Shown: positions 2,636 through 60,068, counted from the stretch's first letter. The stretch is DNA of 64,000 bases from Adineta vaga (GCA_021613535.1 CP075497.1:558001-622000); one strand, 5' to 3'. The notes: generated from the letters alone by a model not told the origin. Numbers and translations: made by a program.

Positions 2636-2681
2636 AGGGCGTGGGTGGGTGTGGTTATATCTTCTTAACCCACACCCAAGA
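2636..2681. repeat. Telomeric-repeat inverted module (G arm / spacer / C arm)
   Basis: gggcgtgggtgggtgtgg-ttatatcttcttaa-cccacacccaag. Confidence 0.7.
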
Positions 2682-3738
2682 AATTCTCCTTTTTACTTTC
2701 CTATGTACGCTCAATATTATTCGTAGCACTGATATTGTTATAAGAAGTTTGTTCTTTAATTAATATTTTGCTATAGTATTCAGTAAACTGATGGGATGAG
2801 ACAGAAATCGTTTTTGATCCCGTTCCATCTCATCCCACTCAGAGTTACGTAAGACACATAGATATATAAATAAGTGATATGTATTTTTACTGTTTTCATC
2901 CAATACATTTATATTTATTATTATTCAACAAACTATCACATTTCGATGCTGCTCAAGTGATTTACATCATTTCTCCTCATATAACTCCTATTTATCGATT
3001 AGAAATATTTTCCATTACAAACAATGATATAGCATTCCAGCTATTGTTGTTCTTTATTTTCTTTTAAAAGATTTGTTATAGTTATTATTGAATAAGATGG
3101 ACAAAATAATTCTTTTTTTATTAATCTTTTGATTCGGGAAGATTATTCACATCTTTTTCAACGCCAATAGTAAGTCCTATTGATTAAGTTGTTGATATAG
3201 TTGAAATTGAGGATATCGGTATCGATGTAGAACACGCACCACATCATGCATCAAGATCTGTGTTGTAATTTTCTATCATGTTGTCGGAATAATACTTTTC
3301 ATTTACAAGCTTCAACAATCATTACTCTGTCACAACAACACAACCTACACAATTCTCTCTCTTACTCTTATTTGAAGAACATCAGAAATACATGTTTGTT
3401 TACATTCTTCTATCGTTTGAAAGACTTCAATTATAATTGAAGTGAAATAACAGCAGAGAAAAAATTTCTTTTTAAGAACGAACGATCATTTATAAAAAAA
3501 AAATTTTCTCGATACACAAATCAGCATAGGTAGGATAGTTTGAGAAAGAAAAACTTTCTATTATATCAGCTTGCCATTTCGATATCCTATTTAACAAGAC
3601 ATAACATGGACTAAGTTCCATGATATTTACTATAACTATAAATTCTTTCATATTATAGTATTAGTAACAAATTTAATCAATTGTCAAATAAAAACAAGGT
3701 AACCTGTATTTATTGATCTAATTAGATTTTGATTCACA

Positions 3739-4212
3739 ATGACCGATAAACATGAAATTCGTGTTCACGAACATTTTCATCGAAAAGGTGATCAAATTAC
3801 TGAAGCTGAATATGTGTACGATGAAATTCTTGGTGAAGGGAAAATAAATCAACAACGTGTCCATGTTAGACGAGAAGTTTTTGAACAAATAGCAGCTACG
3901 ATTAAAAAAGAAACATTATCATTTGATGATTTTATCAAAGTCGTTCGACCGTTTCTAATGGTAGAAAATGCACTCGAAGACATACCTGAAGCATTTAGTC
4001 TACTTGATACTGATAAATCAGATTCAATTAATATTAATGAATTGGCTATTTTTATGCCTGTTATTGTACCCAATTCTAATCAATATTTACTTCTTCGTTA
4101 TTTTCAACCAGCTGATACAAATAAGGATTATAAACTCAGTTTAGAAGAATTCACAGAATTTATCAAGAAAGGTGTTGTACGAGATCTTGCACTTGGACGA
4201 ATTAAAAATTAA
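3739..4212 (+). CDS. EF-hand calcium-binding protein (calmodulin-like C-lobe)
   Basis: 157-aa ATG ORF with two EF-hand loops, EAFSLLDTDKSDSININEL and ADTNKDYKLSLEEF. Confidence 0.85.
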   Translation: MTDKHEIRVHEHFHRKGDQITEAEYVYDEILGEGKINQQRVHVRREVFEQIAATIKKETLSFDDFIKVVRPFLMVENALEDIPEAFSLLDTDKSDSININELAIFMPVIVPNSNQYLLLRYFQPADTNKDYKLSLEEFTEFIKKGVVRDLALGRIKN

Positions 4213-5155
4213 ATTCTTTCGACTAAGATGTTTCTTTTTCGAAAAATGTATTGTCTATGATTCGTAAATAAATGTTCGATGTACTTTTTTACACGGAGTA
4301 TTGACTTTAAAGTATAAAATAAATTGTTTTGAGAGCCATATATATTCTGTGTTTTTTATTGATGTATTTTTCTCTTTTTTTTATGTTCTTCTAATAGTAA
4401 GTAAATGAATGATTTAGTTTGTAAAGATACAATTTGTTTTTATAGTTTGAATCATCAAATTGTTTATGTGATAAAACAAAATCGTCTGGTATATGATTCA
4501 GAACGACACTTAAAAATTTAAAACTAGTCCCTAGAGTTATAGAGGAGTCAATCGAATGATCTTTTTTGCGAATTTCTACTTCACCCCCAAGAAATTCAAC
4601 TATTTGTTTTTGGTCATCGTTTATGAATATAACAACTCTCCTTTGTACCAAGGTTAAGCGTAAACTTGCTACAGTATTTATTAATGTTTTCTTCGTGTTA
4701 ACAAATAGTCTATCAGCTTTTGTGGAATTTCATAGAACATGTTGTTTGAAATGAATGTTTAAATATGTACGTCATTTACCTTTCTCGTTATATTATACCA
4801 ATGGTATTTCGATCATTAGCATAATTTTGTGCTTTCCAATCGTATAACATCGAAAGAATAAGAGAGGAAATTATAGATTTGATACGTATAAGCACTGGAC
4901 CATAGCAAATAAAATAATACCTTTAAATTCAAGTCTGGATACGTTTGATGAAGGTGATTACTTTAAACATTTAATCAAATAGAAACGTATTCAAATTATT
5001 TATTTATTTTCGGGCATGCCAATATGAATAAACGATAGAATCTGAGAAGAGACGAGAGAAAAGAATAAAGCAATGCATATCGGAGATAATATAGCTCTCT
5101 GCAACTGTGATACATGTCAAGGGAATTAGTTTTGTGAGCATTTTATCATTAAGAA

Positions 5156-5214
5156 TGGGTGTGAGTAAAACTATATTTTCTTGTCTCTCATCCACACCGC
5201 ACCCACACCCTCAA
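5156..5214. repeat. Telomeric-repeat inverted module
   Basis: tgggtgtgagt...ctcatccacaccgcacccacaccctcaa; abuts the truncated Helitron fragment. Confidence 0.7.
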
Positions 5215-5497
5215 ACATTTCATCCAGGCACCCTCTCTCAATCCCAAATAGTGCTCCCAATCTCCTCTCCACCCTCAATTGGACCTCAGAAAGCATTGTG
5301 AAAAGTTTCGTGACATTAGCTATCACAGAACCACCTGGGTGAAATTTCACCCACGTCCACCTCCAATCCCATGTCAACCTTCCTCTGAGTCTAAGCAACC
5401 ACTGTAGAAAGTTTGGCGACGCTAGCTATTGTAGGGACTGCGAATGTATAGCGAACAGATAGACAAACAAACAAACTTTCTTCTTTATATATATAGA
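5215..5497 (-). mobile_element. Non-autonomous Helitron, 5' fragment
   Basis: Minus strand starts A|TCTATATATATAAAGAAGAAAGTTTG(TTTG)n...CTGTTCGCTAT...GTGGGTGAAATTTCACCCAGGTG, homologous to the 5' part of the element at 53449. Confidence 0.75.
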
Positions 5498-5712
5498 TAA
5501 GGAAAATCTGAATTAATAATCGTACTATTAATATTAGTCAACTTCATTAACGTTACTGTTTGCTAATGAATCGCTCAAGTTGACATCAATAAAATTGGTT
5601 AGCAAACTGAATCGAACAATAAGATCAGATAATTCATTATAATTTTGTTCTTTCAATGCATTCAATATTTGTGCTGCATCATCAAATCGATCTTGCTCAT
5701 TCAATAATGAAA

Positions 5713-8912: not shown

Positions 8913-9463
8913 ATGGGTAGCAAGATGTTCTCTTCTCTCTCTTACACCATCCTTCTCTTAGCAGGCTTTCCACCCCTCTTCGTTCTATATATATATATAT
9001 ATATGATTAAAAAATTATGGGTGTGGGTGAGGGCATAAACGACGGAGCCATTAGGCTTGTGGAGGTTGAACACGGCCCACGTTTTCGAGAGAGCTTTAAC
9101 AACATCGTGAGAAACCGAATAAATAGTCTCTTTCTCAAGAAAAAATTCAAAAGTGAATCACGTTTGGTGGCTATCGCTATCAGAAGTCATAAATCACGCT
9201 ACAGTTAATTTGGACAACACCACAAAGAATGTGGGGACGAATAAAATTCAGCGATATCTTTTACTTCTGGCCTATACACACAGAGAAGAAACAAAAAATC
9301 AAACACTATAAGGCGTAAAAGCACACATTTTATCATCGCATAAAAAATTTCTTTCAAGATAAACAAGTTTTGAATAGAGGTGTAAGCCGACGTCTCGATC
9401 GGTGGCAGCGACTCGAAATCTTTAATTGTTTTTGATCGTTTTACGGTGGGAGCTCGAAAACCA

Positions 9464-9529
9464 TCTTGAGGGTGTGGATGATAGTATATTATATTGACTC
9501 TCATCCACCCACATCCACACCCATGCCCT
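9464..9529. repeat. Telomeric-repeat inverted module
   Basis: tcttgagggtgtggatg-atagtatattatattgactct-catccacccacatccacacccatgccct; a lone G arm also lies at 9018-9033. Confidence 0.75.
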
Positions 9530-10540
9530 AATACCATAAATATAATCTTTTCTCGACATTGTTTCTATAAATAAGAACAGATAAAAGTCAAATAAAATAT
9601 TCAAGAACGATGAATATTATCTCGCTAAAAGCAAGTCACTTTTCTTCCATTCTAAGTATACACATATGATTCTCATCCTGATTATCTATAATATATACAT
9701 AACGAAGGGACTCAAATTATGTGTGATCTAAATACGAAGAATTATCATAATTAGTAACGTTGTCTGTCTCTTATCAATACTAGCATGAATCCAAAGCTAT
9801 AGATTTGCCATCTGTTTTGAGCTAATCCGTCACCACACAGATTTACATGGGGAAAAAAGTCAGACATCTTAGCTTCAGAAGATGTTTGAAGTGCGATTTA
9901 AGTACAGAGAAGTATTATATAATTGAAGTTTTCTCCCTTTCAGATAGCTCGATTCTTAGGATCATATCATTTCTTTGCTACGTACATTCGTCGGCTCAAA
10001 CGTAGATTCAAATGATTTTTAACTATGAACACTTAATTGGTCAATGTGCCGATTTGATAAAAATTTTACCTTTGACTCTGTCACAAACAAACATAGAAAC
10101 TACTTTTTCATATGAATCTCCTTTCAGTCGAGGGAACAAGATTTTTTTCACCACATTTTATTTCTTCGATCAATCGACTGTATCATAGGTTTCAAAATAT
10201 GAATGAAATACATGAAAAATACTGAGAGGCTCATTCATTTTGACTCATTCAGTAGTCTCTGCATCTGCACATAGCAGATACATAGATCGGCATCGACACC
10301 TGATATCCACGCTTTACACCCTCATACTTATAGTCTTTTAATCGCCTCCTCCTTCATCACAGAATTTATTTGTCTTTAAGCATTCTATTAAAATACATAT
10401 TTTTTTCTCACTAAGCCTATATAAAATAACTTCCACGAATCATCCAAGATAATAACCAAAAATGAATTAAATATCGAATGAAACTATAAATGGCATCGCA
10501 TTTTCTTTTTATTTTGCAGTTGATGTTTAATACAAGTTTG

Positions 10541-11335: not shown

Positions 11336-12295
11336 ATGTCATTCGAAATATTACCAGATGAAATATTATTAATGATCTATTCGTATTTGAATGATATCGA
11401 AATTCTTCACGCCTTTAATGATTTGAATACTCGTTTAAACTCAACAATAATTAACTATCGAAAACATATTCATCTTATACATACAAGATATGGACAATTT
11501 AATCAATATTGTTGTATACTCACTCATACAAATCTAAGCTTACAAGTTCAATCAACCATTTTGGAATCAACTAAAACTCTTTAGAGAACAAATTTGGCCA
11601 TTCGATGAAAAATTTCCAAATTTAGAATGTCTTACATTATGTAATGTATAATGATATGATCACACATTTTGATGTTTATATTAAAACAACAAATGATTTA
11701 ATGATACTTTTACATTACTTTCGTAATCTTTATTTTCTCAGTATTTCAATTCAAAACTTCCAAGCTTCTCCTGAACAACAGTAAGTCTTTTCTTACGTTT
11801 TTGCGATTGTATTTTGTTCTTTTATTCAAAGATCTTTCGATCACATATTCCCAACAACACTCAATACATTTCATCTAGAAGATTTACACGGAACTGATCG
11901 ATCGATATTGAACAAAGTCATACTTATCTTAGTGAATATCTCCAGTCTTCACCATGTTAAATTTCAGATATGTCTAGATCCTGTTATAGGCAACAATGAG
12001 GATGGCATTGATTATTTAAATGGTCAAGAATGGAACCGTATTCGTATGCAATTTCATCATCTTCTCGATTTCGATTGTACTCTATGGACTGTAGTAAGAT
12101 CATACGACGTCAATGACTTATCTGAATATATCATCGACTCGTTTGCACAATTTTAAGCTTGGTTTGTTGATTTGTTTGAAACAATGTCAGACCATTCGTA
12201 CGTATGTGTGTTCACGAAAACACGAAGATTATGCGATGCAAATATAAATCATTCTTTCCTAAACAAACGAAATGGAAAAGAAATAGCAACACTAA
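11336..12295 (+). pseudogene. F-box protein pseudogene, cut off at an inverted module
   Basis: MSFEILPDEILLMIYSYLNDIEILHAFNDLNTRLN F-box motif; downstream frameshifts and stops (11584, 12156); coding-like sequence ends at 12296. Confidence 0.65.
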
Positions 12296-12380
12296 TTGAG
12301 AGTGTGTGGGTGCAGGTGTGGGTGGGTGAAGAGAAGAGTATTGCCCACACCCACACCCACACCCACACCCACACCCTCAA
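12296..12380. repeat. Telomeric-repeat inverted module
   Basis: ttgagagtgtgtgggtgcaggtgtgggtgggt-gaagagaagagtattg-(cccaca)5ccctcaa. Confidence 0.85.
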
Positions 12381-12757
12381 ATCGGCGAATCAACGAGTTG
12401 GAAACTTCAATCTTATGTATAAAATGCTCTCAAAGTAAACGATCTAATACTTGAATAAAGTTTTTCCTGTTATTCTCTCGACATGGCGTATGTATACCAA
12501 CAAAACACAGATGGCGCTTCAAACACTATCAAGAAAAGTTGCTTATTACAATTTATCAAAAGGTAAATGATTCTCTCCAATCAAATACATGTTGCGATGA
12601 TGATTGTGCTAATGCACCACCTTTTTTCGTTGAAAAGAAAAAGAATTAAAAAAAATACTGCATTATGACGCAACATCTTACATTATTCTTACGCAACAGT
12701 CTCGTAAATTTCAACAAAATAATTGGTTTTTTCCCTTTATGAAAGTGACATGTGTGA

Positions 12758-14302
<1,545 letters not shown>

Positions 14303-14509
14303 AATGATAGACCAGGCGGACTTTGATAAATGATTTGAACTTCAGCATAAGAACAACTATTTTAAAACGATTTTATCCCTTTGAGAACCGCTGGCGCATA
14401 TGTGCGTCCTAACATTTTTTTATCAAAATAAGCTATCTTTACGTTTTATTTTGGTTTTGTATACTTTAATTTCAGTGCAAAAAGGCAGTCATAAATTACA
14501 GCATTAGTT

Positions 14510-14543
14510 TTGAGGGTGGGTGTGTGGGTGTGGGTGTGGGTGT
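14510..14543 (+). repeat. Telomeric-repeat G arm fused to a Helitron 3' fragment
   Basis: ttgagggtgggtgtgtgggtgtgggtgtgggtgt runs directly into Helitron-internal ctgcatcc. Confidence 0.75.
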
Positions 14544-15071
14544 CTGCATCCAGGATGGACAACTACAAAGCGTGGGTTGGGTTCTCAAAAAAACTGAATC
14601 TGGAGTGAAATGACTACTCTATCTGTATAGAGTAGAAGTGAAGTTTATAAAGTAGAGAATGACTTGCAGCGAGACAGAGGGTGTAGAATGGAACTAGAGT
14701 TGCAGCGGGACAGTAGGAGTGGATTTAAAAGGAACAGAGCTGTATATCGTATGCAAAGCGAGAGAAAATCTGTAGGAAAGAACTAATGAAGAGATGCGAA
14801 GTTCTGAAAAAAGACCTGGTGCATGACGCGAAAAGGGATATAGGAAGGATCTCAGTACGGAGGAGAAAGACGTGTGAAAGACAGGTAACGTACTCTGAGT
14901 GACGACCTGAAAGATTACACTAACTAAGTCAGGGCGGAAAAGGAGGGTGTGAGGATTTTTTGATGCACGACGGATAAATACGAACGAGGAGGTCCTGTGG
15001 GTGATAAGAAAAGCACTGCTGTAGATAAAAAACGTAAATTGTGTCGTTTTTGCAGCGGTTATCTCCGCTAG
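14541..15071 (+). mobile_element. Non-autonomous Helitron, 3' fragment
   Basis: Homologous to 53745-54022 with extra internal segments; ends GCAGCGGTTATCTCCG-CTAG|T. Confidence 0.75.
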
Positions 15072-15765
15072 TATATTATACTCTCATTCTCACCATCATG
15101 TCCTATATTCTTAGAATAAAGAAAAAAGCCATAGGAATATGACGAATAGTAAATAACCAGACAATTTGTTTTTCAATAATTTAATATTCCCAATAGAATG
15201 CCATTGTTTAATACATATTTAGATTAAAATAAATGTGGAAACTTCGGATTCTATCCGAAAGTTATGTGTATTCTAAAAAGTGTATGAGACTTAAGCTACA
15301 GAGCACTCTAAGTGTTGTATCAAGATTTTACAATGAGTAACAAAAGATACGTCCGGACAGCCGAGTATTGCGAACCCAAACGAGATATTGCTATAACGCT
15401 ACTTCCGAGAAAATTTCACGACAGCTTAGAGGGGCTTCATGCAAAACTCAAGAATGCCATCATAGTTTAAAACTGGAGAACCCAAGCGATCTCCGCGCCA
15501 TAGCATAGCATATGATTTTGAGGACACAAAAAGAATAATTCGTATTGTTCAGGTCGAAATGATCTTTTTCCATTAGTCAAAAGTTGACTTGATATAATCA
15601 CTTGGTTAGTCATATGTTCAATGACAAATTCAGAATATTATAATTTCATTATCTATATATCAAGTGACACGGCGATATGTAGACGCAATTAGTAGATTAT
15701 TTTGAAAATTATGGAAAAATTATTTTCTTTACTGTATTGATTTCGAAAAAAATTATAAAATACAG

Positions 15766-18700
15766 TTAACAAGTTTGTAAGTAGAGACTTAAACTGTCTG
15801 TTCCATTATTTATTACAGCAACATCTATTTTTCCATCGCGACTAAAATCAGCAAGAGCAAGTGAAGATGGATGTGATCCATATGGCATTGCAAAGAAGAT
15901 AATAGAATCAAATGTCCCATCACCATGACCAAGAAAAATCCCAAATTTATTATTATTATAATTCACAACGATGATATCTAACTTATTATCATCATTTATG
16001 TATCCAACAACAACAGAATAAGGTAATGATGATGAGCCTGTTGAATATGTTGTTTGATTTATAAATAAATTACTATCATTACCATTGAGAAAAACACTGA
16101 TAGCATCAGAACCAAAATTAGCAGTGACGATATCTAATTGAGTATCATCATTGAAATGACCTGTAGCAATAGAATATGGATAAGAGTTATTACCAGTTGA
16201 ATATGTTGTTTGATTTGTAAATGTAAAATTTCCATATCCAAAGAAAACACCAATATTATGAGTACCTGAATTAGCGACAATAATATCCATATGATGATCA
16301 TTATTAAAATCATCAATTACAAATGATCGAGATCGAGAATTGTTACCGGTCAAGAGTGTTGTTTGTTTCTGAAAAACGAGATTTTGATGTCCGAACATGA
16401 TAACTATAGATGCATCACCTGAATTTGCAACAACAATATCAAGATGATTATCATTGTTAAAATCATGAATTGCTAATGAATATGGATTGGAACCAGTTGT
16501 ATACCTTATTTGAGTAGCAAATAAACCCTCACCGTTTCCTAACAAAACACTTATAAAGCTGTCACCAGAATTAGCAACAATGATATCTAGATGATTGTCA
16601 TTATTACAGTCACCGATAGTCACAGATACTGGAAGAATACCAACTGGAAAGTTTCCTGGATCTGAAAAAGATCCATTCCCATAGCCAATGAGGACAGTAA
16701 CTCTACGTTCACCTACAGTAGTTGTAACAATATCTAGTCGATTATCATGGTTTAGATCTCCAACTGCTAATGCATATGGATAGATACCAACTAAATAATT
16801 TACTTGTTGAGAAAAAGAACCGTTTCCAAATCCAAGACAAATACCAATACTATTATTACCATAATTAGTAATAGCAAGATCCAAATGAGAATCATTATTG
16901 AAATCAGCTACAATTACTTGTTGTGGAGTGTAGCCAGTTTGGTTTCTAATTTCAGTTAAGAAAAAAGAACCATTACCAAATCCTTGATATAGATTGATAT
17001 TTTGTTCGAAAGTGATGATAATTAGATCTAATCGATTATCTTCGTTAAAATCAGTCACTGCGAGATGTTGTACGCTAAGCCCAGCTGAATAACTAATTGG
17101 ATCGAGAAAATTATCTTTATCCTTTGCTAAAAATATAATGAAACGACCTTTATTATCTCCAACAACTAAATCTAATCGATGATCAGAATTAAAATCACCA
17201 ACAGCAACACAAAGTGGACCAGTACCAGCTGAATATGTCGATGGATCTATAAAACTTCCATTCTCTTGTCCATAAAGAATACTTATATCATTGGAATCAA
17301 AACTGACAAGAACAATGTCAATAAAACTATCATTATTAAGATAATCTAAAGTCACATATCTTGGAGTTAAACCAACTGAATATTTGTGTGTAAGTACAAA
17401 AGATCCTGTATTATATGTAGTAAACATATTTATTGAATCACTATCATCATATGCAACAATAATCTCGGATTGTTCATCACGATTAAAATCACTGGCAGAG
17501 ATAAATAAAGGAGAAGATAATGAAGGAGTTTGATAGATTTCTTGATGAATAAATGAACCTTGTCCATTTCCAAGTAACATTCCAATTTGATTCGACGGAG
17601 CAGCAAGAGCTACAGCAACATCTAATTGTTGATCTCGATTAAAATCACCCAAAGTAATCGACGATGGATGTGAATTTATGTTTAATTGAATCTTCATTTG
17701 ATCATGAAAATTGACATTTTCATCACCAAACAGAACAGTGAGATCATCCGTACCATAGTTAGCAGTGATAATATCTAAATGAGTATCATTATTTATATCA
17801 TCGATCAACATTGATCGTAATTTTGAACTTCCACTTGATGCATAAGTTAAAAAATTTCTAAGAAGACCTTGATTATTTTGATATAATACTGCAATGAAAG
17901 TACTTCCTATATCTGTTACAACTACATCCAATCGTTGATCTTGATTAAAATCACCCATAGTTACAGCAGATGAAAGTGAATTAGTAAAATATGATAGTGC
18001 AGTACTAAACGAACCATTTCCATAACCAAATAAAATATAGATATTTGTCACATACTGACAAGCAACTACAAGATCTAGATATGTATCATTATTCATGTCA
18101 CCAATCTCTATGTATGATGGGCCACTACCAACTCCATATGTCACTTGTTTTCCAAAAGAACCATTTCCATAACCAAGAAAAACATTTACAGTTTGACTAA
18201 CATACAAAGTAACGACAACATCCATGTATGTATCATTATTAAAATCAGCAGTTATTACAAAATGTGGATAAACACCAGTTGAATATTTGATTTGATTAGC
18301 AAAACTTCCATTTCCATGTCCATACAAAATACCTATACTGTTATCCAAGAAATTGGTGACGATTAAGTCAAGATAATGATCATTATTGATGTCATTTATA
18401 GATATAAAACGTGGTCCACTACCAGTTGAATATGTCATAGGTGGTGCAAAAGAACGATTGCCATAGCCTAGAAAAATCCATATAGTGTCGTTACGATAAC
18501 TAGTAACAACAATATCTAATCGATTATCATTATTCAAATCATTGACAGTTATGGAGTATGGAGAAGAACCAGTTGGATATGTACCGTTAGTGGAAAACGT
18601 GCCATCACCTTTTCCCCAGTATATTTGCATATTATTACTATTATAATTAATAACAACAATGTCAACATGTGTATCATTATCAAAATCTCTAACAACTGCA

Positions 18701-22033: not shown

Positions 22034-22036
22034 ATT

Positions 22037-25277: not shown

Positions 25278-25315
25278 ATGTATGCGAGGATCGAGGGATG
25301 TTATAGAAAGACGAA

Positions 25316-42867: not shown

Positions 42868-42931
42868 TTGAGGGTGTGAGTGTGGGATATAGTTGAATAA
42901 TAATACCCTCACTCACACCCACACCCTTCAA
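42868..42931. repeat. Telomeric-repeat inverted module
   Basis: ttgagggtgtgagtgtggg-atatagttgaataataata-ccctcactcacacccacacccttcaa. Confidence 0.85.
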
Positions 42932-43253: not shown

Positions 43254-43254
43254 A

Positions 43255-43327
43255 AGGGTGTATGAGGACGGGTGGCGTTGTGTGTGGATCTCTCGTTAAC
43301 CTACGCTCACACCCACACCCTCAAGAT
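43255..43327. repeat. Telomeric-repeat inverted module
   Basis: agggtgtatgaggacgggtggcgttgtgtgtgg...ctcacacccacaccctcaagat. Confidence 0.75.
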
Positions 43328-44132: not shown

Positions 44133-44558
44133 ATGGCGATCACAAGTTGTCGGAATCTTCGCCCCAATGAGGCCGAAGAGAACAAAGAAGATTTTACTCT
44201 CGTTTGGCTCGATGAAAATATCGATAATTCATCAGATTCTCTACAGATACAGATGCAAATGCGGAATGTGAACAATTACTACCAATTCTATACCAACTCA
44301 GAACTCTGTCTCGAGTTTATGCGAACAGTTCAAAATGAGAAAATATTCCTCGTTGTTTCCGAGATCCTGACACCTAGTATATTACCCCAAATCCAATCGT
44401 TACAATCGATCGCTTCGGTCTTCATCTTCTGCACCAACTGTCATGACTATCTCTCTCTACTTAATCAATATCCCAAATTCGCTCATCAAATCAATTCTAA
44501 AAAGAATCTATTTCGCCTCGAAACAAACACTCTTGTTTAGTCTCTTTGATCAGAAACT
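44133..44558 (+). pseudogene. 5' fragment of an ART-TPR family gene (N-terminal domain only)
   Basis: ENKEDFTLVWLDENID...EKIFLVVS...SVFIFC resembles the N-termini of 40777 and 29006; fused at about 44559 to the duplicated F-box block. Confidence 0.7.
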
Positions 44559-44872
44559 AAGGTAATGTAGATAAAACAGTAAGTAATGAAATAAGATTTT
44601 CTTTTTTAAATATTATCAACACAAATTGATTGCAGATTATTAAATAAATAATCAAGCTTGATTTTATATCGAATAGATGAATTTGTAATTAATTGTTAAA
44701 AACGAGAATTTAGATTGAAAAATGCACAAATTATATCCAAACCGTATCTTTTATTTTTTTCCAGAACAGATTCGATAAAATTGAATAAATCAGCTCAATC
44801 AGTAATTCATTTTTAAGAATTTGAATAGCTTTGATTATATTCATTGCCTGTGTAAATAACAATTTCTTTGTT
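44559..44872 (+). repeat. Segmental duplication, copy 2 (internally deleted)
   Basis: Matches 21376-22033 but lacks 21559-21907, which is replaced by ccgt. Confidence 0.9.
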
Positions 44873-44964: not shown

Positions 44965-45040
44965 TCTTGAGGGTGTGGGTGTGGGTGGGTGTGAGTGTAG
45001 GTGAAGAAGATATACCCACACCCACACTACACCCTCAAGA
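44965..45040. repeat. Telomeric-repeat inverted module
   Basis: tcttgagggtgtgggtgtgggtgggtgtgagtgtagg-tgaagaagatata-cccacacccacactacaccctcaaga. Confidence 0.9.
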
Positions 45041-47424
45041 ATATAGAAAATAAAACTAATGTCACGAAAAAACTAAGAAGATGTTCTTGCATGAAAGTTT
45101 TAATTCCTATTTTTGTTGTTGGCGAAACTTGTGGATTTTTAGCCAGAAATGATAACGCAGGTTTTGAGAATGGTAATGATGGAGCTGATGTTGTAGTTTT
45201 ACCATCAATAATCTTGCCGGGCCTCATAAGTTGATTTTGCACCAGACCAATTCGCTTTCGATTGCAATGAGCCAAATATGCACAGTATAAGAATGCAAAT
45301 AATCCCGGGATAATAGTCACAACAAACAAATACATAAGCCAATTGTCCTGCATTTGTTTTAACCAGTTTGCTGTTGCAGCCAATATGTCACCGCCGCTTT
45401 CGATAAGTTTACTGGCGGTTTTGCCAGCTGTATACATAACCATGCGCACAGGAGTATCATTGAACTGTTTTGTTCGATCAAGAAGAATGCACGATGACAT
45501 TCATGCTGTATGAATTGTCCACATTACCAATTTTGAGAGCCATTACTGAAGGCAAAAAATAATCAAATACTAATGTTTAAAATGTTCGAATGTAGCAAGT
45601 ATTTTTATAAGTATAATGATAAAAACGAGAAGAAAAACAAATGATAAGAATTCTTTTTCTGATCATGCAGAAATCTAAAAAAATACGTTGAATATTATCA
45701 AAAGTCTATGATTTCTTATGGTAGTACAGATTGATTCAGCTATTTCTACTCCTTTTCTTCAGTTGTTTATCTGTATATGGTTAGATATTGCAGTAACTGC
45801 TGTATCTAATTGTTTAGCGTCCAGTTGATTTACTTCGTTTTTTTTAGTCAAAGAATGCATCAAACTGTAGAGGATACAAAAAACTATTTTTGCAAGCTCA
45901 TAACTCATTGAAAGCAAAACCGATTGTTTCGAAAAATAGTTTCACATTGAGGAGATATGTAAAACGTTAGGACACAGAAGAATAACTTGAATCAAAAATA
46001 TTCCGATTAAAAGAGGATTGAATGACGCATTTAGCGATATAAATTACATGAAGTATACATGTTGGAATTTTCAAAAAAAATATTCTGAATGCATCTTAAA
46101 GTCTATCATCTTTTTTCCTTGTCATAGTACGTATTAAATCAAATGAAGTCCATACAAATCGATCGAGTAGCCAGGGGTCTATTCAAATGTGTAAAAATAA
46201 AAAACGACTACTACTTAATAGAAATAGAGTCAACTGAAGAAAAATGAGCAAGAATAGATGAACCATCTTGCACAGATAAGTAGACGTCCTTTTCCCGCCT
46301 CATTTATTCGTTATTCGTCATACCTCTAACTCATTTCCCTCTCATCGTCTGCCTTCGGTTTCATAATTGACCCAAAACCTCTTTCAACATCATCCAATAT
46401 TTGTGTTAAAATCGTCAACTCTGTAGCTGTCCTGTTACAGGGCCGCTCACGACAGTTCTATCAGTCGTGGCCGGATTATTGTATTATCTACTTGATGGTG
46501 GTAGTAGTAAATGATATCATCGTTCTTACCTATGCTGTGATTTTTTCATATTATGCTTTTATCGTCATATTCTTGGTCGTTTACAACATTCATCTCATAC
46601 ACGTGGTGTTCTTTCATGATACTTTTACCCATCTTTATTTTATTTGTTGTCTGGAACAATGTTTTCTCTCTTCTCTTTTTTCTTTTTTTTCTTTTCTCTT
46701 TTATTCTTATCGGTTCGTTTCTTTATGTATTACTTGCACGCACCACTCATTTTTTTCTTTTCTTTTTCTTATCGCTTTACCTCCTCATTTACTACATACA
46801 TGCGCTACCCATTCGTTCTTTTTTCTTTTCCTCTCCAGTTTTTCTCTCTTCTCATCTTTCGACTTGTTCGATGGAAGAAGGAACGTCTCATCGCATTCTG
46901 CCACGAGTCGTGTACATGTGATCACGGGTAGTATATAATAGAGTGCTTCTGACTCTAATATGTGTGTGTTTTTCTCGTTCTCATCATCTCAAGAAAGCTC
47001 GAGTTAAGATACGAGCCCACAATATTGCTTGAAGATTCAAATCTCTCGTCAGTTGTACTCTGTCAATATCAGAATAGTTTTGATAAAATCTGACTGCTCA
47101 TAATCGATTCCGTGCTTTGGGACAGAGATGACGAATGATTCGTCTAATCACCGATCTCTATCCTTCGGATTTCCTGTTGGACCTCGTTCAACTTTCAGAT
47201 TGCTCTAAATGATTTTACTTTTGATGAAGTGAACTCCTAGAGTATAATTGTTAGTGAGCGAAGTGTCATTCACACGCTCTCTTCTTCATCTTTCTGTCGA
47301 TGTGTCATTGGAATTTTACTACTGTTTCAGATTTAAACACCAGCAATTTTGCAGGATAAAAGAAAGAGACAAGATCACACAATATCAGCTGACTTCTAAG
47401 ACCGACAGATCGGTAGCAACTACA

Positions 47425-48502: not shown

Positions 48503-48562
48503 AGGGTGTGGGTGTGGGTGTGGGTTAAGACTGTAGCGTGAAGTATACCCACACCCACCCCA
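48503..48562. repeat. Telomeric-repeat inverted module
   Basis: agggtgtgggtgtgggtgtgggt-taagactgtagcgtgaagtata-cccacacccacccca; a degenerate module also lies at 48339-48396 and a lone arm at 49018-49039. Confidence 0.85.
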
Positions 48563-50027
48563 AATCGGAAGTCCATTGAGATATCTAGCCGTGGCAGTAG
48601 TGATGACTTTGATGATATTGAATATGTTTTAAATTGCATTGAAAAACCTTCAATATCTATTAAACATTGTACATTTTCCGTCAAAGCTGGTTATGATGAA
48701 TTTCGTATGAAAATAAGGTGTTATTTCATTTACCATTATTAACTCACTTGATAATTGAGATAATCTATGCTCTTGAAGACTTTATCGATATCGTAAACAC
48801 ATGTCTCATTCATGCAAAGCATTTACTTTATTTGTACCTTCCTATAAGCTACGGCATATTCTTAAAGAAGTATCTAATACAATGGAACAGAATATTCAGT
48901 TATGGTTAAAGGAAAATACTCTTTTAGGTGACTCGATGATCGGAAGAGAGTTTCATGCATTCATTGGTGGTGATGTCTCGATCTGGTTCTGCTATTAAAG
49001 TTTTTATGTAGACCAAATTGAGGGTGTGAACGTGTGAGTCTCTTGGATTACATACTTTTGTTAGTTTTCTTTTACTGTAAGTGGATGACGTTGCTTTAAT
49101 CGTTGAAGTTTATGTTGATAAAATTCTCGAAGTCGAAAACTATTATAACCCATTGGTTTTTCAATTAATCTTTTAGATAGCACAATGGTTGTTTATTAAA
49201 GAGCATTTTCCCGAGTATTCTTCAAGATAGATTTACATGTGGCGAAGAAAAGTGTAGAAATAGAACTTTCTCAAAATTATTCCACTCCCATGATGTAATT
49301 GAATACATTCTATGATAAAGTATATTTATAATACATGTACGTACATATCTTTCAGCTGTTTCCAATTTAGTATGAGGAATATCTTCAAAGTTAATTAGAT
49401 TTATATCCAAATCGTTTACCATTGTAGTGGATTCTTGTCCTAACCAAAAATTACAAAGCAAATTCATAACAATATACATTTCTTTACATTCAATTTCTAT
49501 TTCCTTCATCTGATTCATTTTTATTCTGATAACAACCTCCTGTCATTGAATGATATAATAAAAAAATAGATGCCAAGTCTATAGACCAAAGTTGTCCTTG
49601 AACATCATTCGTATTTCGAAACTTTTTTCACTAGTAAATAACTAAACTATACTTGATGGTTTATGACACAATCCCAAAGTTGTCTCTGCTTCGTATTATT
49701 CATTAAAATCAAATTGAGATTGTTCACAATTTTTGATTTTGAACTTTTCGAAATACATAAATAATTTTTCTGTTCAGAATATTCTTTCTTAGGTATCGCA
49801 TCTTTCTATAAAATTCATAACTTTTTTATTATCATAATTAATATCATTATCATTAAGATACGAATGAACAAGAATATAAATATAACATGCTTCATATTTA
49901 TCCATTTCTATTTGAACACGTTCTAAATACTCTTGAAACATATAACTTTCTTCATAATGTTTAAAGATTTCAAAGTTAATACTGTTGTAAGTATCATCAA
50001 TTGTTTCATTTTAATCGAAAATAGGTA

Positions 50028-50138
50028 AGGGTGTGGGTGTGGGTAGTTGTAGGAGTAGATGTTAGATAGCTATGGCACTCACACCCGCACCCGCAGGCAT
50101 CCACTCTCACGCCTAGATCGACACCCACATCCGCCTCA
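50028..50138. repeat. Telomeric-repeat inverted module joining two unrelated gene fragments
   Basis: agggtgtgggtgtgggt...cactcacacccgcaccc...acacccacatccgcctca. Confidence 0.75.
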
Positions 50139-53186: not shown

Positions 53187-53448
53187 ATTTCACTTGATAA
53201 AATATGAAATGAAGAGAGAACAAACGGCGTACGTTTATACGTTCGATAAACATACCATACGCTCTGATCGTGATAATACAAAAGAACAGATGAAGAACAA
53301 GAAAAAATTCAAAGGTTACTTTGCTGATTAAATTAAAATTTGATATTAGCCTTGCTTTTTTTGTCGAAGATACCTAATTTTAATTTATGACTAATAAATT
53401 TAGATAAACTTTCAAATCAGAATATCTTTATCTATCTATCTATATATA

Positions 53449-54022
53449 TCTATATATATGGAGAGAGAAGAAAGTTTGTCTGTTCGCTATGCATTCAGTC
53501 CCTGTAATAGATAGCGTCACCAAACTCTCCACAATGCTTCCCTAGGTCCAGAGGAAGGTCGGTCGACATGGGGTTAGAATGGTCATCAAGGGGTAGGAGT
53601 GGGGGCGTGGGTGAAATTTCACCCAGGTGATGGCATATAGGAATTTTTCGATCCCACTGATAGTTGGTGACACCAAACATTTCACGAGACTCCACTAAGT
53701 TCCACGGAAGGTCGAGAGGGGGTTGCCACCTCCAAGGGATGTGAGTGTCTGCATCCAATATGGACAACTGCAATGCCTGAGTTGGGTTCTCAAAGAAAAC
53801 TGAATCTGGAGTGAAATAACTAATGAAGAGATGCGAAAAGTTCTGAAAAAATGACCAGGTGCATGACGCGAAAAGGGATATAGGAGGGGCCTCAATACGG
53901 AGGAGAAAGACGTGTGAAAGACAGATAAATACCAACGTAGAGGTCCGGTGAGTGATGAAAAAAGCACTGTTGTAGATGGAAAACGTAAATTGCGTCCTCT
54001 TTGCAGCGGGTATCTCCGCTAG
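53449..54022 (+). mobile_element. Non-autonomous Helitron with both ends present
   Basis: A|TCTATATATATG... 5' end (could start up to about 20 bp earlier in the TCTA repeats); 3' AGCGG-gtatct-CCGCT stem overlapping CTAG|T; no TSD; two partial homologs in the window. Confidence 0.8.
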
Positions 54023-54516
54023 TAGTGAATAAAATAGACAATATCCGATATCTTGAGCTGTGATTATTTTCTTTTAATGTTAGAAAGTACAAAAATACAC
54101 ATGAATCGAATAGTCTTATATATATTTGTGAATTAATTGAAAACTGTCAAGACTGATGTTATTGTTTTTTGTTTCTTAGGAAAATCTTCGATAGACAGTG
54201 TATTTAAAGTCGATAGAAAATGATAAACAACTGGTAATTAGTATTCCAACAGGTGATTTTTTTCCATGAAAACCAAGGTAGAATGAAAATTAATTTTGTC
54301 AATCAATTGAAAAATTAGTAAAAAAGTGTGATTAGAAAAGTAGGAAGTGAATATTATCAAAGTACCATGAATAGTCAAATTTATTATTCATCTAAGTCAA
54401 CAACGTAAACGATGGTATATATGCAATAATTTGTAATTGTTTCAATCAAAGTTTCTAGTCGTGATTATGCGGCATCAAATGAAAAGAACGAGCATTCTAC
54501 ATTTGTTTGTCGTACT

Positions 54517-54708
54517 CTTGTGTGAGGGTGAGGGTGAGGGTGAGGAAAAGGTGTGATTAAAGCGCAGTTGTACCGATTCTCTGTCGAATCCACCTAACTT
54601 TGACTATAAAGACACTTTTGGAAGACAAAAATTTTTCTCATAGAATGAATGACTAACATGAGGGTGTGGGTCAGACTATACTCTCAACCCTCACCCACAC
54701 CCAAGATG
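54517..54708. repeat. TGAGGG arm (54517-54545) and an inverted module (54659-54708)
   Basis: cttgtg(tgaggg)3tgagg; tgagggtgtgggt-cagactatactctcaa-ccctcacccacacccaagatg. Confidence 0.75.
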
Positions 54709-55732
54709 CCCATTACACAGTCAGATTATATACAAATTCATTTCAAAATTTCGTGAAGAATTTCGACGTTGATGTTTTCGATATGGAGTTGAAGTTTTCA
54801 AAACGTATACTCGGTTAATTAGATGTTTATCATTAAAAACTCAACGAACTGTACTTCATGAAAATCAAAAGGCACATAGAAATAATATACATTTGACAAG
54901 GCCTATTCAAGGAAACAATATCATTATTCGTATTGGATAGAAAAACAAGCATGCACATTTATCGTCATTATTTTTTCGTTGTCTTGTGTTATTTATTGGT
55001 TTTCGTCTTCTATAAGTAATAGATATATTTGAAATAATAAAAATGAACATACACTAATATGCAATTTTCTATGTTCAAGTTGAAATGAAGCAAAAAAAGT
55101 GTTTCTGAAACTGATCACTGTGATAGATCTTGAGGATAAAAGGTGTGAGTCGGAGTGATGAATGATGACAAAGAAGACGTCCACAACCACATCGTTTTAT
55201 ATGGTTTTCATCGTGGAAAATCATTAGATGTCTTTTTTGGTAGAAACTGAAATCTTATGGATTTTGTTTTTGATTTAGTTTTTTTGAAATAAATATTCAA
55301 TTCATCTGTCGAGACAATTTTAATTAGGCATAATGCTTTTGTGACTCTGTCTCGTTGCTTATTCTCAGAGCTTAAGACAACGAAAATGAAAATTATACAT
55401 TCATTTCATAGTGTCAATATAGTTGTCAAAGAAATTTTATTTATTATTACATTTTTATACTTAAAAGAGATTCTTTGATTTTAATAAATTATCAATTCAG
55501 TTTATTTTCAATAAATCTTGCGGGTGTGAGTTACGGATAAGAATTCCAGAGACATCTACTTCCACATTGAGAGTAAACGTTTTTTTGTCAATATCATTGG
55601 ATGATGAACATTTTTTCACTGCTATCAATATGTCTTATTATTAGTTCTAGATTATTTATGAATAAATGAAACGTATTGAAATTGCTAGCTATATTCAAAC
55701 GAAAAAGAATCTTGATAATTTATTGATTGTCA

Positions 55733-56245
55733 TCACGGACCCAATGGTTTTCCATTAGAGATAGCGTTTATCCATTTATCTGTTTGAGTAATATAATCAG
55801 GATCTCCATATGGATATTGAGGATCGATTTTGTTAGCATCGCTGGTAACGACAGCATTCGGACCTGAGTTGTATGCACGTCTTGCAAGATCCCAGCTACC
55901 AAACTTTTCATAATTCTCTTGCAAATAATGAGCACCGGCCAAGATATTTTCCTCATGACCACTTAATCCTTCGAAATCATTTGAATGTTTTTGTTTCATA
56001 TCTTGAAATGTTCTGTTATTGATTTGCATGAGTCCTGTATCACGTCCTTGCTGTTGATTTTGTGTAGCATTAACACCAGCACGTCCACGTGATTCTTGAT
56101 ATAATACACCACCAATAATTGATGCCGGAACTCCTGTTTTCTCAGCAGCCGATTCAATTTCATTACGCCATTGTCCAATACTTGAATCAATTTTATCAGG
56201 TAATTTCGATGGATTAGAGGCACGTGAAGGAAGACCACGATCCAT
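55733..56245 (-). CDS. Lytic transglycosylase SLT-domain (GH23, lysozyme-like) protein, bacterial type
   Basis: IESAAEKTGVP..IIGGVLYQESRG (catalytic Glu), DTGLMQIN, ENILAGAHYL, ARRAYNSGP; intronless, 170 aa. Confidence 0.9.
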   Translation of the reverse strand: MDRGLPSRASNPSKLPDKIDSSIGQWRNEIESAAEKTGVPASIIGGVLYQESRGRAGVNATQNQQQGRDTGLMQINNRTFQDMKQKHSNDFEGLSGHEENILAGAHYLQENYEKFGSWDLARRAYNSGPNAVVTSDANKIDPQYPYGDPDYITQTDKWINAISNGKPLGP

Positions 56246-57473: not shown

Positions 57474-57535
57474 GAGTGGATGAGGACGTGTGGGTGAAGA
57501 TGTACATGAGTTTATACTCTTAACCCACACTCACA
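57474..57535. repeat. Degenerate telomeric-repeat inverted module
   Basis: gtgtgggtgaaga...tatactcttaacccacactcaca. Confidence 0.6.
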
Positions 57536-58199
57536 TTTATTCGATTGATTATATTATTGATAATTATCAACAATATCAAATTTTTTTACTATCATTTAAG
57601 TCGGAAATAAATCCTTTATTATCGGGTTTATTGATTCTATTTGTTGGAGTAAGATGCAATAAGATGATAATTGTTTTGCAAGTTTTAATGAAGCTAAAAA
57701 ATAATTTACGTTCAATTTATATTCATGAATTGTGTAATTGAATAAAGGGAGAGTAATAAACAAAATATGATTTTTTGTATTCTTGTCTATACTGACGATG
57801 AACAATAAATAAAGATATGCTGAATATAATATATTCGTTTGTTCATAACTATATTTATATATGATTATATATATATATTAGATTGACCAAAGCTTTTGAA
57901 CGTTACTTCTAATCGAATGTTTAAAGGTTCATTTGTAATAAGTCTACGTCTTTGTTCTCATTGGTCGCGATACACATGAAAACAGTTTTTAAATTATTTT
58001 TCTGTCTGTATATGATTTATGTATGGTTTTGAATAATTAATTTCAAATTTATATATTAATGATGTCGCTTTAGTCTTTTCAAGATCGTGGTAATAAATAA
58101 AATTGTAAGACAATAATAATATATTTTCCTGTCTCTTTCTCTTTTTGATGGCGATGTACTGGTGTTATATATACATAAATAAGACAATAAGGAATGTTA

Positions 58200-59681
58200 C
58201 ATGTTCGCTATCTGGTTGCAGTTGTTACGTTGTATTAATTTTTCCAATCGTATATGTAATTTTTCCTGTAAAACAGGATTTTCTCCGATTGGATTGCCAC
58301 ATAGATCTAGCGTAATAAGTGTCTATATGTAGAAGAAAAGAGATATTGATACGATATGTAGACAAACGCAGAGAATATGAACAAGAATCACCTGGTTATT
58401 TTCTAATGCATCGATCAGATGTTGTATTCCGATAGTATGAATTCGATTGATAGAGAGATCGAGTGTATTAAGTGTCTATATACATGAAAAGAATGAGTAT
58501 AGTTATATGAAGTAGATGAAGAAAGAAGATTATACTTGATTATTTCTTATGGTATCAGCTAAATATTTTGCTCCTGAATCTCCAATTTGATTGAGAGAGA
58601 GATTGAGTACGGTAAGTGTCTGTATGATAAAATCATGAAGTTAATGAAGAAATAAATATATATAGTTACCTGATTATTTTGCAATGCATCGGCTAGATAT
58701 TCTGTTCCTTGATCTCCGATTTGATTAGTGTAGAGATTGAGTTTGATCAATGTCTATGTATTAAAAGTAACAAAAACGATGATACAAAGTAAATTACGAG
58801 AGAAAAATGAGTACCTGATTATATCTTAATGCATTGGCAAGATGTTGTGCTCCAGTAGATCGAATTTGATTATCGGCGAGATTCAGAACAGTAAGTGTCT
58901 TTCGAATATATAATGAAGATATTAATATGAAATAATGACGAGGGAAAAATGCTTACGTGATTATTTCTTAATGCATCAGCTAGATATTCTACTTCTTTAT
59001 CACCGATATGATTAATAGCGAGATCAATTGTGTTCAGTGTCTGTATAAACAAATAAACTTTGTAGTATAAGATGAATGAAGCGTGAGGGAAAGAGAAAGG
59101 AAGTCACATGATTAGTTCTTATTGTATCACCAAAATATTTCGCTCCATTGGTTCCAATTCGATTATCTCGAAGATTGAGTATAGTAAGTGTCTGTAGACA
59201 AATATGAAGTTGACAATATAGGATATTGTAAAGAAAATTACCTTATTTTCAAGTAATGCAATGGCTAAGTGTTTTGCACCTTTATCTCCGATTCGATTAC
59301 TTTCAAGATCTAGTACAACGAGTGTCTGTATAAAGAAGAGTGTACATTACAAATGAGATATTTTATTCGATAAATAAATCCTTTTTATATTATTTTAATG
59401 TCGTATATTTTTAGAAATTCTTAATAATAATTAAATATTACCTGATTATCATGGAGTACTTTGGCTATAATCTCAGCACCTTCATGTGTTATACTATTGT
59501 TCGATAAGTTAAGATTGGTGCATTTTTGCTTGATTATTGCTTCATTCAACACATGTTCAATATCATCATCAGTCAAGTTTTTTTCTCTATAGGATAATTC
59601 CAAAGAATATTTTGGTTTGATTTTAATCTTTTCTTCATTTTTCTGTAAACTTGTATTAGTATTCGAAGTTTTCAAAGCCAT
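58200..59681 (-). CDS. Ribonuclease-inhibitor-like LRR protein (NLRC3-like repeats), one 28-aa LRR per exon
   Basis: First exon MALKTS...LNLSNNSITHEGAEIIAKVLHDNQ, then about eight exons of roughly 84 nt of form TL..L.L..N.IGD.G...LA.AL.NN separated by 50-120-nt GT-AG introns; final exon(s) uncertain. Confidence 0.85.
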
Positions 59682-60008
59682 TGTAGATAAAATCTATCTA
59701 TAAATAGAGAAATTTAATTAAAACTATCGAATTATTTTGTTCATTGGTGGCCCAAAACATGTTTCTATCGGTATTCATCTTATTTTTTGTACAAAATCAT
59801 TTGTTGTTTGCCTATTTGTACAAACGTTTCTTTTGATGAGAGAAAGACACACATGCTTTGTTATTTTTATTTTACGAAGCTTTTAAAAAACGTTTCTATC
59901 AATACATGTGACCATAATAACATCAATGAAAACAATACATTTGAATTTAAAACAGGCTGATGCTGTCATAGCAACATACTAACAACAAATAAATAAAATT
60001 CAGTTCTA

Positions 60009-60068
60009 TTGAAGTAGGTGTGGGTGTGGGTCTTTTGTATTCATACCCACACCCACCCTCACCCTCAA
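60009..60068. repeat. Telomeric-repeat inverted module
   Basis: ttgaagtaggtgtgggtgtgggt-cttttgtattcata-cccacacccaccctcaccctcaa. Confidence 0.85.

Follow-up and report, generated by a model that had tools for sequence, protein, structure and literature searches.

Head-to-head telomeric-repeat modules as candidate end-joining scars in a subtelomeric region of the bdelloid rotifer Adineta vaga

Introduction

De novo telomere addition at double-strand breaks is known from yeast, ciliates, the programmed DNA elimination of nematodes, and human cells. A classic head-to-head telomere fusion array is found at human 2q13, and short templated insertions are left at repair joints by alternative end joining and by synthesis-dependent strand annealing. 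Bdelloid rotifers survive the shattering of their genomes and carry many foreign genes near their chromosome ends. Here we describe short modules of telomeric repeats in a 64,000-nt stretch of the genome of the bdelloid Adineta vaga (C6:558001-622000), which we refer to as the window and in which positions are counted from the first nucleotide. Each module consists of a G-arm of telomere-type hexamers (TGTGGG or TGAGGG), a short spacer and a C-arm of the complementary hexamers. Based on the comparisons below, we believe, with a probability of a little under 0.6, that the modules are repair joints, formed by abortive telomere-type capping of free ends followed by head-to-head joining that is bridged by a copied module.

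The genome comprises 100.8 Mb in six contigs with a G+C content of 32%. In the chromosome-level assembly (TGTGGG)n is found on all scaffold ends, and the subtelomeres contain many transposable elements (TEs), foreign genes and rearrangements (PMC8494291). The window lies 0.56-0.62 Mb from the contig end, and we therefore regard the region as subtelomeric. Short interstitial telomeric stretches in subtelomeres and possible neotelomeres at breaks are already known in bdelloids (PMC2861651, PMC3846280, PMC6431247, PMC13564844), and telomeric repeats cap 5'-truncated copies of Athena/Terminon elements, with host genes captured in between (PMC6431247). After irradiation of A. vaga the karyotype is faithfully restored, with neotelomere scars only, and interspersed telomeric repeats show no meaningful change in density; neotelomere and Athena signatures are limited to a few breakpoints of deletions in lines of A. 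vaga (PMC13564844). In this literature (PMC2861651, PMC3846280, PMC6431247, PMC13564844; the founding papers in PNAS 2007, Science 2008 and MBE 2017 were outside the comparison) we found no description of a head-to-head module as such, of an absolute polarity, of the non-telomeric prefix, of the rule that TGAGGG is outermost, or of the spacer families.

Results

Geometry and polarity of the modules

The window contains about 20 modules with a G-arm, a spacer and a C-arm, and about nine lone arms (Table 1). Locally, we sampled the window, 200 kb of C1, a small number of paralogous loci and roughly 130 kb of sequence from other species. An earlier note on this DNA had listed 25 coordinates for such modules, and telomere-type hexamers were indeed present at 25/25 of them, with three (22775, 48339 and 55515) being weak or degenerate. 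In a cruder scan for repeat units, the window had about 40 G clusters and about 37 C clusters, compared to about 19 of each expected from shuffles.

The same note had stated that the G-arm comes first in every two-armed module, and a genome-wide scan for motif and polarity bears this out. The core pattern GGGTGTGGG N4-34 CCCACACCC has 609 matches in the genome, compared to 4 for the reversed (C-first) control, and a strict pattern that includes the outer TTGA/TCAA, TTGAGGGTGTG N10-40 CACACCCTCAA, has 48 matches compared to 0 for the reversed control. When modules were parsed by their coverage with telomeric 5-mers, pairing arms that are at most 80 nt apart, we counted 19 G-then-C pairs versus 1 C-then-G pair in the window, and 31 versus 5 in the 200 kb of C1 (16.0-16.2 Mb). 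The cruder unit scan gave 18 versus 2 in the window.

Arms are typically 8-38 nt long, plus a single array of about 230 nt at 24960-25192, and spacers range from 9 to 46 nt with a median of 19. The lengths of the G-arm and C-arm within a module are uncorrelated (rho 0.18). The modules fold into strong hairpins, with a median minimum free energy (MFE) of -22 kcal/mol and a z of -4.3. No target-site duplication (TSD) had been visible to the earlier reader, and this holds in the larger set: a direct flank repeat of at least 6 nt was found in 0/50 modules, and the longest word common to both flanks has a mean of 3.34 in these 50 modules versus 3.43 in controls.

Homology ends at the arm edges

To locate the junctions, the window was aligned to its paralogs elsewhere in the same genome. 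In seven places (12302, 22033, 26834, 42927/43323, 48561 and 49017) the homology to the paralog ends exactly where an arm begins or ends; in addition, a repeat is cut short at 14543. Homology-block endpoints fall within 8 nt of an arm edge in 8/30 cases, versus 2.3% expected (P=3e-7). The earlier note had already remarked that many modules coincide with truncation points of genes and TEs.

The individual cases are informative about what was joined. Window positions 40201-44561 match C3:19008552-19016989, and the module at 42869 is common to both copies. Between 42927 and 43323, the window has a 325-bp fragment and a second module, C3 has about 110 bp of other sequence, and the homology restarts exactly past the C-arm of the 43255-43323 module. 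Past 26834, the window continues as a lone TGAGGGTGTGA followed by unrelated DNA, and C3 has a different continuation. Window positions 21908-22033 match 44746-44872 in the window itself; the first copy turns into ATTCT-TGAGGG and further repeats, and the second runs on. Relatives of window 12214-12302 and of window 48561-48991 are found without any arms within one kilobase at C3:1364001-1365200 (L006). The two pieces are separated by 190 nt in C3:1364001-1364709 and by 36 kb in the window, where both end at arms: the piece at 12214-12302 stops at a G-arm, and the piece at 48561-48991 has a C-arm on one side and a G-arm on the other. At 14543, a 1.3-kb repeat present in more than 30 copies breaks off within its own internal ACACCCACA motif, where the G-arm of the neighbouring piece meets the repeat. 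We saw no module inserted in collinear DNA, that is, no empty site, in the paralog comparisons of the window, which cover the paralogs of one genome only.

Telomeric G-strand repeats start at unique DNA and point away from it, and the paralogs show the DNA continuing at the position where the arm starts. In the pieces that could be resolved, the C-arm is always on the left and the G-arm always on the right, which is the form of a double-stranded fragment with both of its 3' ends extended by the G-strand. The polarity and the stops at arm edges agree with the geometry proposed in the earlier note, two 3'-extended (capped) ends joined tip to tip. On the strength of these alignments, our results support modules being joints between unrelated sequences and not insertions. 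They also support the region being a mosaic of unrelated capped pieces joined tail-to-tail, an idea already present in the note, given the unrelated fragments between modules and their constant C-arm left, G-arm right arrangement.

Spacers form recurrent families

The spacers had been described as mostly unique, and this part of the description did not survive. Among 50 spacers, 44 pairs have a common 8-mer, versus 12.6 for shuffled spacers and 16.9 for random genomic segments, and this amount of sharing, about 3x the control, was reached in 0/200 controls. The recurrent families number at least four: TTAAGAGYATAGYCTGA, a purine-rich type (GAAGAAGA...ATA), TTAGATAGATGTAGTAC and GAATACAAGAGAC.

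The motif of family A, TTAAGAGYATAG, has 51 matches in the genome. About 38 of these are between a G-arm and a C-arm, always directly 3' of GGG and in one orientation, with unrelated flanks and with arms of 9-35 nt; the remaining matches equal the chance control count. None of the 51 matches belongs to a longer repeated element. The motif never extends into longer common sequence, and we therefore ruled out, for family A, that the spacer is the 3' end of a longer retroelement of the Athena/Terminon kind. The first unit of the C-arm varies in step with the spacer, and the complete prefix described in the next section can be on either side within one spacer family and orientation. These patterns indicate that spacers are copied between unlinked loci and are not random filler. 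With spacer families present across unlinked loci, plain ligation of two capped ends is insufficient as an explanation.

A shared prefix at the outer ends of arms

The outermost hexamer is TGAGGG in 43/85 arms, versus 8/61 among inner hexamers (P=3e-6). Outside this hexamer there is a flank consensus that fades outward (T 76%, C 47%, T 50%, A 53%, or ATCT-TGAGGG when read toward the arm), so the outer ends of modules are not arbitrary. The sequence CCATCTTGAGGGTG has 174 matches genome-wide versus 0 for the control, and farther out than the prefix these matches show no conservation except a frequent A or AA. The order at the start of an arm is an (AACC)ATCT-TGAGGG prefix and then TGTGGG repeats. 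The earlier note had taken both hexamers to be reported bdelloid telomere repeats. For TGTGGG this is documented (PMC8494291, PMC7943196); for TGAGGG we found no such report beyond the 3' tails of A. vaga Terminons, which are (ACACCC)n or (TCACCC)n (PMC6431247).

The prefix bases (TCT/AGAT) at 26834 and 43323 pre-exist in the uncut paralog as microhomology, and at 22034-22038 they are not in the paralog and hence were added. Prefix bases that are sometimes microhomology and sometimes synthesised would be expected if ends align variably on a template of approximately (CCCACA)nCCCUCAAGAUGGUU. A template with CCCUCA as its alignment part and CCCACA as its copied part would give a single TGAGGG and then TGTGGG repeats. 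We infer from the consensus that the cap is templated, and the proposed template sequence given here is read from that consensus.

A TERT RNA-binding domain is encoded at C2:6094386-6094754. A scan for the template-like sequence CACCCTCAAGATGGT returned mostly modules and a few matches in central parts of chromosomes. Three matches in central regions have no G-arm in the 65 nt upstream (C5:10929229-10929333, C6:10257824-10257928 and C4:12143928-12144032), and we consider these candidate template-RNA genes worth checking.

Distribution along the chromosomes

All of the strict modules (48/48) are in distal chromosome regions, with 0 in the centres. For most of them the distance to a contig end is at most about 3.7 Mb, and the largest distance is 5.6 Mb. 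The earlier note had envisaged routine, genome-wide repair of desiccation breaks. That role is not supported: the exclusively distal position of the strict modules fits better with subtelomere-specific turnover, or with selection against the process in other regions.

A processed SRP54 copy between modules

Between two of the caps, window positions 12785-14302 contain an intact, intronless open reading frame (ORF) for SRP54 of 505 codons; its A. ricciae counterpart is interrupted by about ten introns of 52-58 nt. Just upstream of the SRP54 coding homology, at about 12800-12813, 14 nt match the rotifer spliced leader exactly (Table 1 of PMC3795323). There is no poly(A) at the 3' edge of the copy. 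In A. ricciae and Didymodactylos, SRP54 has introns and a conserved RING/RAWUL neighbour, and this neighbour is absent beside the window copy. With its lack of introns and its spliced-leader remnant, the piece is a processed retrocopy (cDNA). Its position between caps suggests that cDNA, besides chromosomal fragments, can be a substrate for capping. A foreign origin of this gene was ruled out, given that the protein is rotifer-type and 84-87% identical to that of other Adineta.

Independent support, age and transcription

Short-read contigs from three independent studies (2013, 2015 and 2022) span 42859/42868-43323/43352 with zero differences. Two modules, together with the piece that separates them, are contained in the spanned stretch at 42859-43323. 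A paralogous C3 segment that is 93-96% identical keeps the module at 42869-42927 with few substitutions, and since the window and the paralog have it in common, this module is inherited and stable. G-first modules with TGAGGG outermost are also found in A. ricciae (L036 9435-9510, with an ATCT-like prefix), in A. steineri (L039 4762-4840, also with an ATCT-like prefix, L039 7744-7802 and L045 8164-8241) and in Rotaria sp. Silwood1 (L038 6140-6200). No C-first modules were found in the sequence from A. ricciae, A. steineri and Rotaria (about 130 kb). An assembly artefact, which the earlier note had listed among its possible refutations, is ruled out by the contigs of three studies that span the joints, by the module shared with a paralog and by the presence of modules in other species.

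An RNA-type contig from run X14 is unspliced through 44973-45383, including the module at 44968-45037, and the same run shows a true splice from 45545 to 46530. Transcript contigs that read through modules unspliced rule out that the modules are introns or introners. The minus-strand ORF at 45027-45500 encodes 157 aa without a Pfam match; RNA-type contigs cover it, and it is joined by splicing to an exon at 46530-46635. The telomeric cap encodes its final four codons and the stop (FLRV*), so the claim that modules lie outside intact ORFs has at least this exception, with one arm providing the end of a transcribed ORF.

Catalogue of the window and neighbouring elements

Table 1. Modules, lone arms and capped pieces in the window
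Feature	Position	Strand	Remarks
Two-armed module, 13-nt spacer (purine-rich family)	2641-2678		Hexamer check, 5-mer parser
Two-armed module, G-arm weak, C-arm ends in CCCACACCCTCA	5156-5213		Hexamer check, 5-mer parser
Lone G-arm	9018-9033	+	
Two-armed module, left side with complete prefix AACCATCT-TGAGGG	9467-9523		
Lone C-arm, short, ACACCCTCA	10316-10324	+	
Two-armed module, C-arm is (CCCACA)6 CCCTCA	12302-12379		Left-flank homology to C3:1364001-1364091 ends at G-arm, TTGAG microhomology
Capped piece, apparent processed SRP54 copy, C-arm left, G-arm right	12380-14510	+	
Lone G-arm, joined to 1.3-kb repeat cut at its own internal ACACCCACA motif	14511-14543	+	
Lone G-arm	22039-22056	+	Homology to window 44746-44872 stops 5 nt upstream; ATTCT added
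Degenerate (old) module	22775-22858		Interior like degenerate module at C3:1364886-1364960
Two-armed module, left prefix AACCATCT, right prefix CCCTCGAGAATG	24086-24152		
Long, degenerate array of about 38 G units (about 230 nt) with 24-nt spacer and C-arm	24960-25270		From 25114 within 450-bp multi-copy repeat
Lone short G-arm TGAGGGTGTGA	26835-26844	+	97% paralogy to C3:18983904-18985171 stops here; preceding TCT also in paralog
Two-armed module	29129-29174		Hexamer check, 5-mer parser
Two-armed module	30177-30247		Hexamer check, 5-mer parser
Two-armed module, also in C3 paralog (L001 7543-7600), few substitutions	42869-42927		
Capped 325-bp gene-family piece, 76% to C6:990214, C5:4945683, C5:160827	42928-43254	+	Not in C3 paralog
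Two-armed module not in C3 paralog	43255-43323		Paralogy restarts at 43323, AGAT microhomology to cap
Lone C-arm, short	43866-43875	+	
Two-armed module, encodes end of minus-strand ORF 45027-45500	44968-45037		Unspliced in RNA-type contig
Degenerate two-armed module within transcript contig (47332-48404)	48338-48388		
Two-armed module, 21-nt spacer near-identical to one at C1:16005910	48503-48560		
Capped 460-bp piece, 83% to C3:1364283-1364709, there armless and continuous on both sides	48561-49018	+	
Lone G-arm ending the 48561-49018 piece	49019-49038	+	
Two-armed module plus second C-arm stretch	50028-50138		
Lone G-arm of TGAGGG units	54520-54555	+	
Two-armed module, family-A spacer (reverse complement of TTGAGAGTATAGTCTGA)	54659-54703		
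Weak lone G-arm	55522-55530	+	
Two-armed module, spacer in part family A	57481-57534		
Two-armed module, GAATACAARAGAC spacer family	60017-60067		

A large segmental paralogy connects 25568-44561 with C3:18983904-19016989 at 93-98% identity, with several replacements. Window 26835-32880 is unrelated to the approximately 4.9 kb found in C3, and about 13 kb of C3 is missing from the window near 37350. A 2-kb repeat at 33785-35779, with internal AAACGCGTC-type tandem repeats and at least six copies at 85-92% identity, is missing from the C3 paralog, which is 97-98% identical and in which C3:18990952 and 18990951 abut. Given this clean empty site, the repeat is a recent transposon insertion, unlike the telomeric modules. 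In the other direction, the C3 copy of an ART-TPR gene has a 4-kb insertion with inverted GGGGGGGTCGCGACCCCCC-like ends (C3:19010438-19014480, L001 2438-6480) that is not in the window copy (40777-42543).

The family of 1.3-kb repeats (more than 30 copies, 82-96%) is represented in the window by fragments at 5280-5500, 14523-15080 and 53424-54036, and a full copy is found at L007 2384-3705. It contains GGGTGAAATTTCACCC mini-hairpins and CTGATGA...GAAA strings that resemble a hammerhead core, yet there is no Rfam match. Rfam gave no hammerhead ribozyme match, with the gathering score as threshold for the window and E up to 1 for the 1.3-kb repeat. A 450-bp repeat at 25114-25564 (at least eight copies, 82-94%) contains a module, with the spacer and C-arm at 25218-25270 and TACTGATCA-type repeats after it. 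Since this repeat contains a module, some modules also spread passively within larger repeats.

Among the 19 ORFs of at least 150 aa in the window we found no reverse transcriptase (RT) family; 18 were scanned against Pfam, and the 19th is a translated telomeric array. On the minus strand at 15766-19971 there is an intronless FG-GAP repeat ORF of 1401 aa that belongs to a family with at least eight full-length copies at 71-80% nucleotide identity, all of them distal. A 170-aa ORF at 55733-56245 (minus), which carries a lytic transglycosylase (SLT) domain of bacterial type (E = 4e-18), is a candidate for horizontal acquisition and sits between the weak lone G-arm at 55522 and the module at 57481.

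Discussion

Proposed mechanism

In the mechanism that we propose, an RT with a fixed RNA template of about 5'-(CCCACA)nCCCUCAAGAUGGUU-3' would act on a double-stranded DNA end. This enzyme would most likely be telomerase, which we favour because a TERT gene is present; given the (ACACCC)n/(TCACCC)n ends of Terminons, a Penelope-like RT with such an RNA is also possible. Microhomology of 0-5 nt somewhere within AGAUGG/CCCUCA of the template would position the end, and its extension would give a tail that starts with (AACC)ATCT-TGAGGG and goes on as TGTGGG repeats. The telomerase RNA template with its 3' flank would then encode ATCTTGAGGG, and the template RNA would contain CCCACACCCUCAAGAUGGUU outside any module. 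Broken chromosomes, fragments of DNA and, in at least one case, a double-stranded cDNA would serve as substrates, and because all free ends would be capped alike, each piece would end up with a C-arm to the left and a G-arm to the right.

With one to a few repeats, the tails would presumably not be long enough for telomere function. Two G-tails cannot pair with each other, so one of them would invade or anneal to an existing module elsewhere, or to a module transcript. The invading tail would copy the spacer and then the first part of the C-arm; the C-rich end made in this way would anneal to the second G-tail. Joining that is bridged in this way would produce the fixed order of G-arm, recurrent spacer and C-arm, with arm lengths and outer ends that are independent of each other. 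Lone arms may be capped ends that were joined to uncapped ends via microhomology. The process would be confined to subtelomeres, or only tolerated there, and would be older than the split between Adineta and Rotaria.

Several points weigh against this proposal. The bridging step is a model, and both the enzyme and the template RNA are postulated, the latter from the consensus. The junction evidence consists of seven places in one window plus the endpoint statistics, and the empty-site comparison covers paralogs within one genome. About 40% of the spacers are without a recognised relative, and gene conversion between existing modules could likewise homogenise spacers. The restriction to subtelomeres could reflect selection and not the site of action. 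Part of what we describe may already be reported in the PNAS 2007, Science 2008 and MBE 2017 papers.

Alternative explanations

The main alternative is a patch made in one step, in which a hairpin RNA (a module transcript) is reverse-transcribed from one broken end and the cDNA is joined to the other, so that one end only is capped; the RT could be that of Athena or another Penelope-like element, telomerase or some other enzyme. From the spacer families and the co-variation of the inner units it follows that arm, spacer and arm can be copied as a unit, modules are transcribed within untranslated regions, the RNA hairpin is strong by its MFE, and a cDNA piece is located between modules, all of which speak for such a patch. 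We consider it unlikely: the same decaying prefix is present on both outer ends, either side can be the complete one within a spacer family and orientation, with no fixed run-off side, the arms vary from 9 to 35 nt within a family with no correlation between the two, and lone arms consisting of the prefix and 1-3 units are found at 26835 and 22039. A second alternative is the version in the earlier note, where telomerase or an Athena RT caps the ends and plain end joining with random filler as spacer then serves as routine desiccation repair across the genome. That version shares with ours the geometry and the junction evidence, and neotelomere signatures at breakpoints speak for it (PMC13564844). 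However, spacers that recur far above chance and are copied between unlinked loci, the distal position of 48/48 strict modules, and the faithful karyotype and essentially unchanged density of interspersed telomeric repeats after irradiation (PMC13564844) lead us to regard it as improbable.

We also considered a miniature foldback element, similar to a miniature inverted-repeat transposable element (MITE), that has telomere-like inverted termini and transposes, with ectopic recombination rearranging the surroundings later. Inverted arms, a terminal consensus, spacer subfamilies and hundreds of copies are what such an element would show, and class II elements with terminal inverted repeats dominate the TE content of A. 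vaga (PMC8494291). On the other hand, the termini are ragged, with a decaying consensus instead of a fixed end, arm lengths vary between 8 and about 230 nt without correlation between the two arms, lone arms are common, and the prefix bases are in some cases already in the target. The paralog comparisons gave no empty site, and where a paralog is without the module, one flank is unrelated. With no TSD in any of the 50 modules and no fixed ends we ruled out a MITE, and transposition of this kind is in our view very improbable as the origin of the modules.

Significance

If the modules are repair joints bridged by copied modules, they are a sequence signature of DNA incorporation at chromosome ends, and they show which ends were free, how these were primed (from the templated prefix) and that earlier joints were reused as template. 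The proposed template sequence is a handle for finding the telomerase RNA or another RNA, and the module signature makes subtelomere growth and gene capture testable. A broader and more doubtful idea is that bdelloid subtelomeres are built by a dedicated end-capture pathway, in which any free double-stranded end in the germ line would be capped by telomerase and stitched in via self-propagating bridges. If this were true, the substrates of end capture would be chromosome fragments, cDNAs and possibly ingested foreign DNA. End capture would then be the physical entry route of retrocopies and horizontally acquired genes, each with a readable signature.

Comparison with known systems

Athena/Terminon elements (PMC6431247, PMC3846280) resemble the modules in being subtelomeric, in having short telomeric stretches and in their association with captured host genes, and their (ACACCC)n/(TCACCC)n tails complement the G strand, matching the mix of TGAGGG and TGTGGG in the modules. 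In contrast to the modules, which are head to head, the described Athena/Terminon arrays are head-to-tail with one repeat orientation. In addition, neither an RT ORF nor a hammerhead was recognised in the window, and the spacers do not form the ends of a longer element. The templated insertions of alternative end joining and synthesis-dependent strand annealing are similar in that short stretches are copied from elsewhere at joints. The difference is that the donor here would be other such joints, reached via telomeric tails, and with donors of the same kind the filler would form self-propagating families.

As in chromosome healing, the G-strand repeats of the modules start at non-telomeric DNA and point outward, and with a templated cap as proposed they would also begin at short template matches. 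Unlike in chromosome healing, the rotifer ends are non-terminal: all arms in the window are internal and joined to further DNA, and none forms a new chromosome end. Their tails comprise 1-6 repeats, in rare cases about 40, and each is fused head to head to a second healed end; the first unit is the variant TGAGGG, preceded by non-telomeric templated bases. With telomere-telomere fusion arrays the modules have in common the head-to-head order that marks a fusion scar, a G-strand array and then a C-strand array on one strand. The arrays do not directly abut and the flanks are not former chromosome ends. There are instead hundreds of tiny joints with 9-46-nt spacers from recurrent families and a templated outer prefix, between unrelated pieces of kilobase size whose flanks are gene or TE fragments and a retrocopy. 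In our reading, the modules of A. vaga combine telomere healing with joints of the telomere-fusion type.

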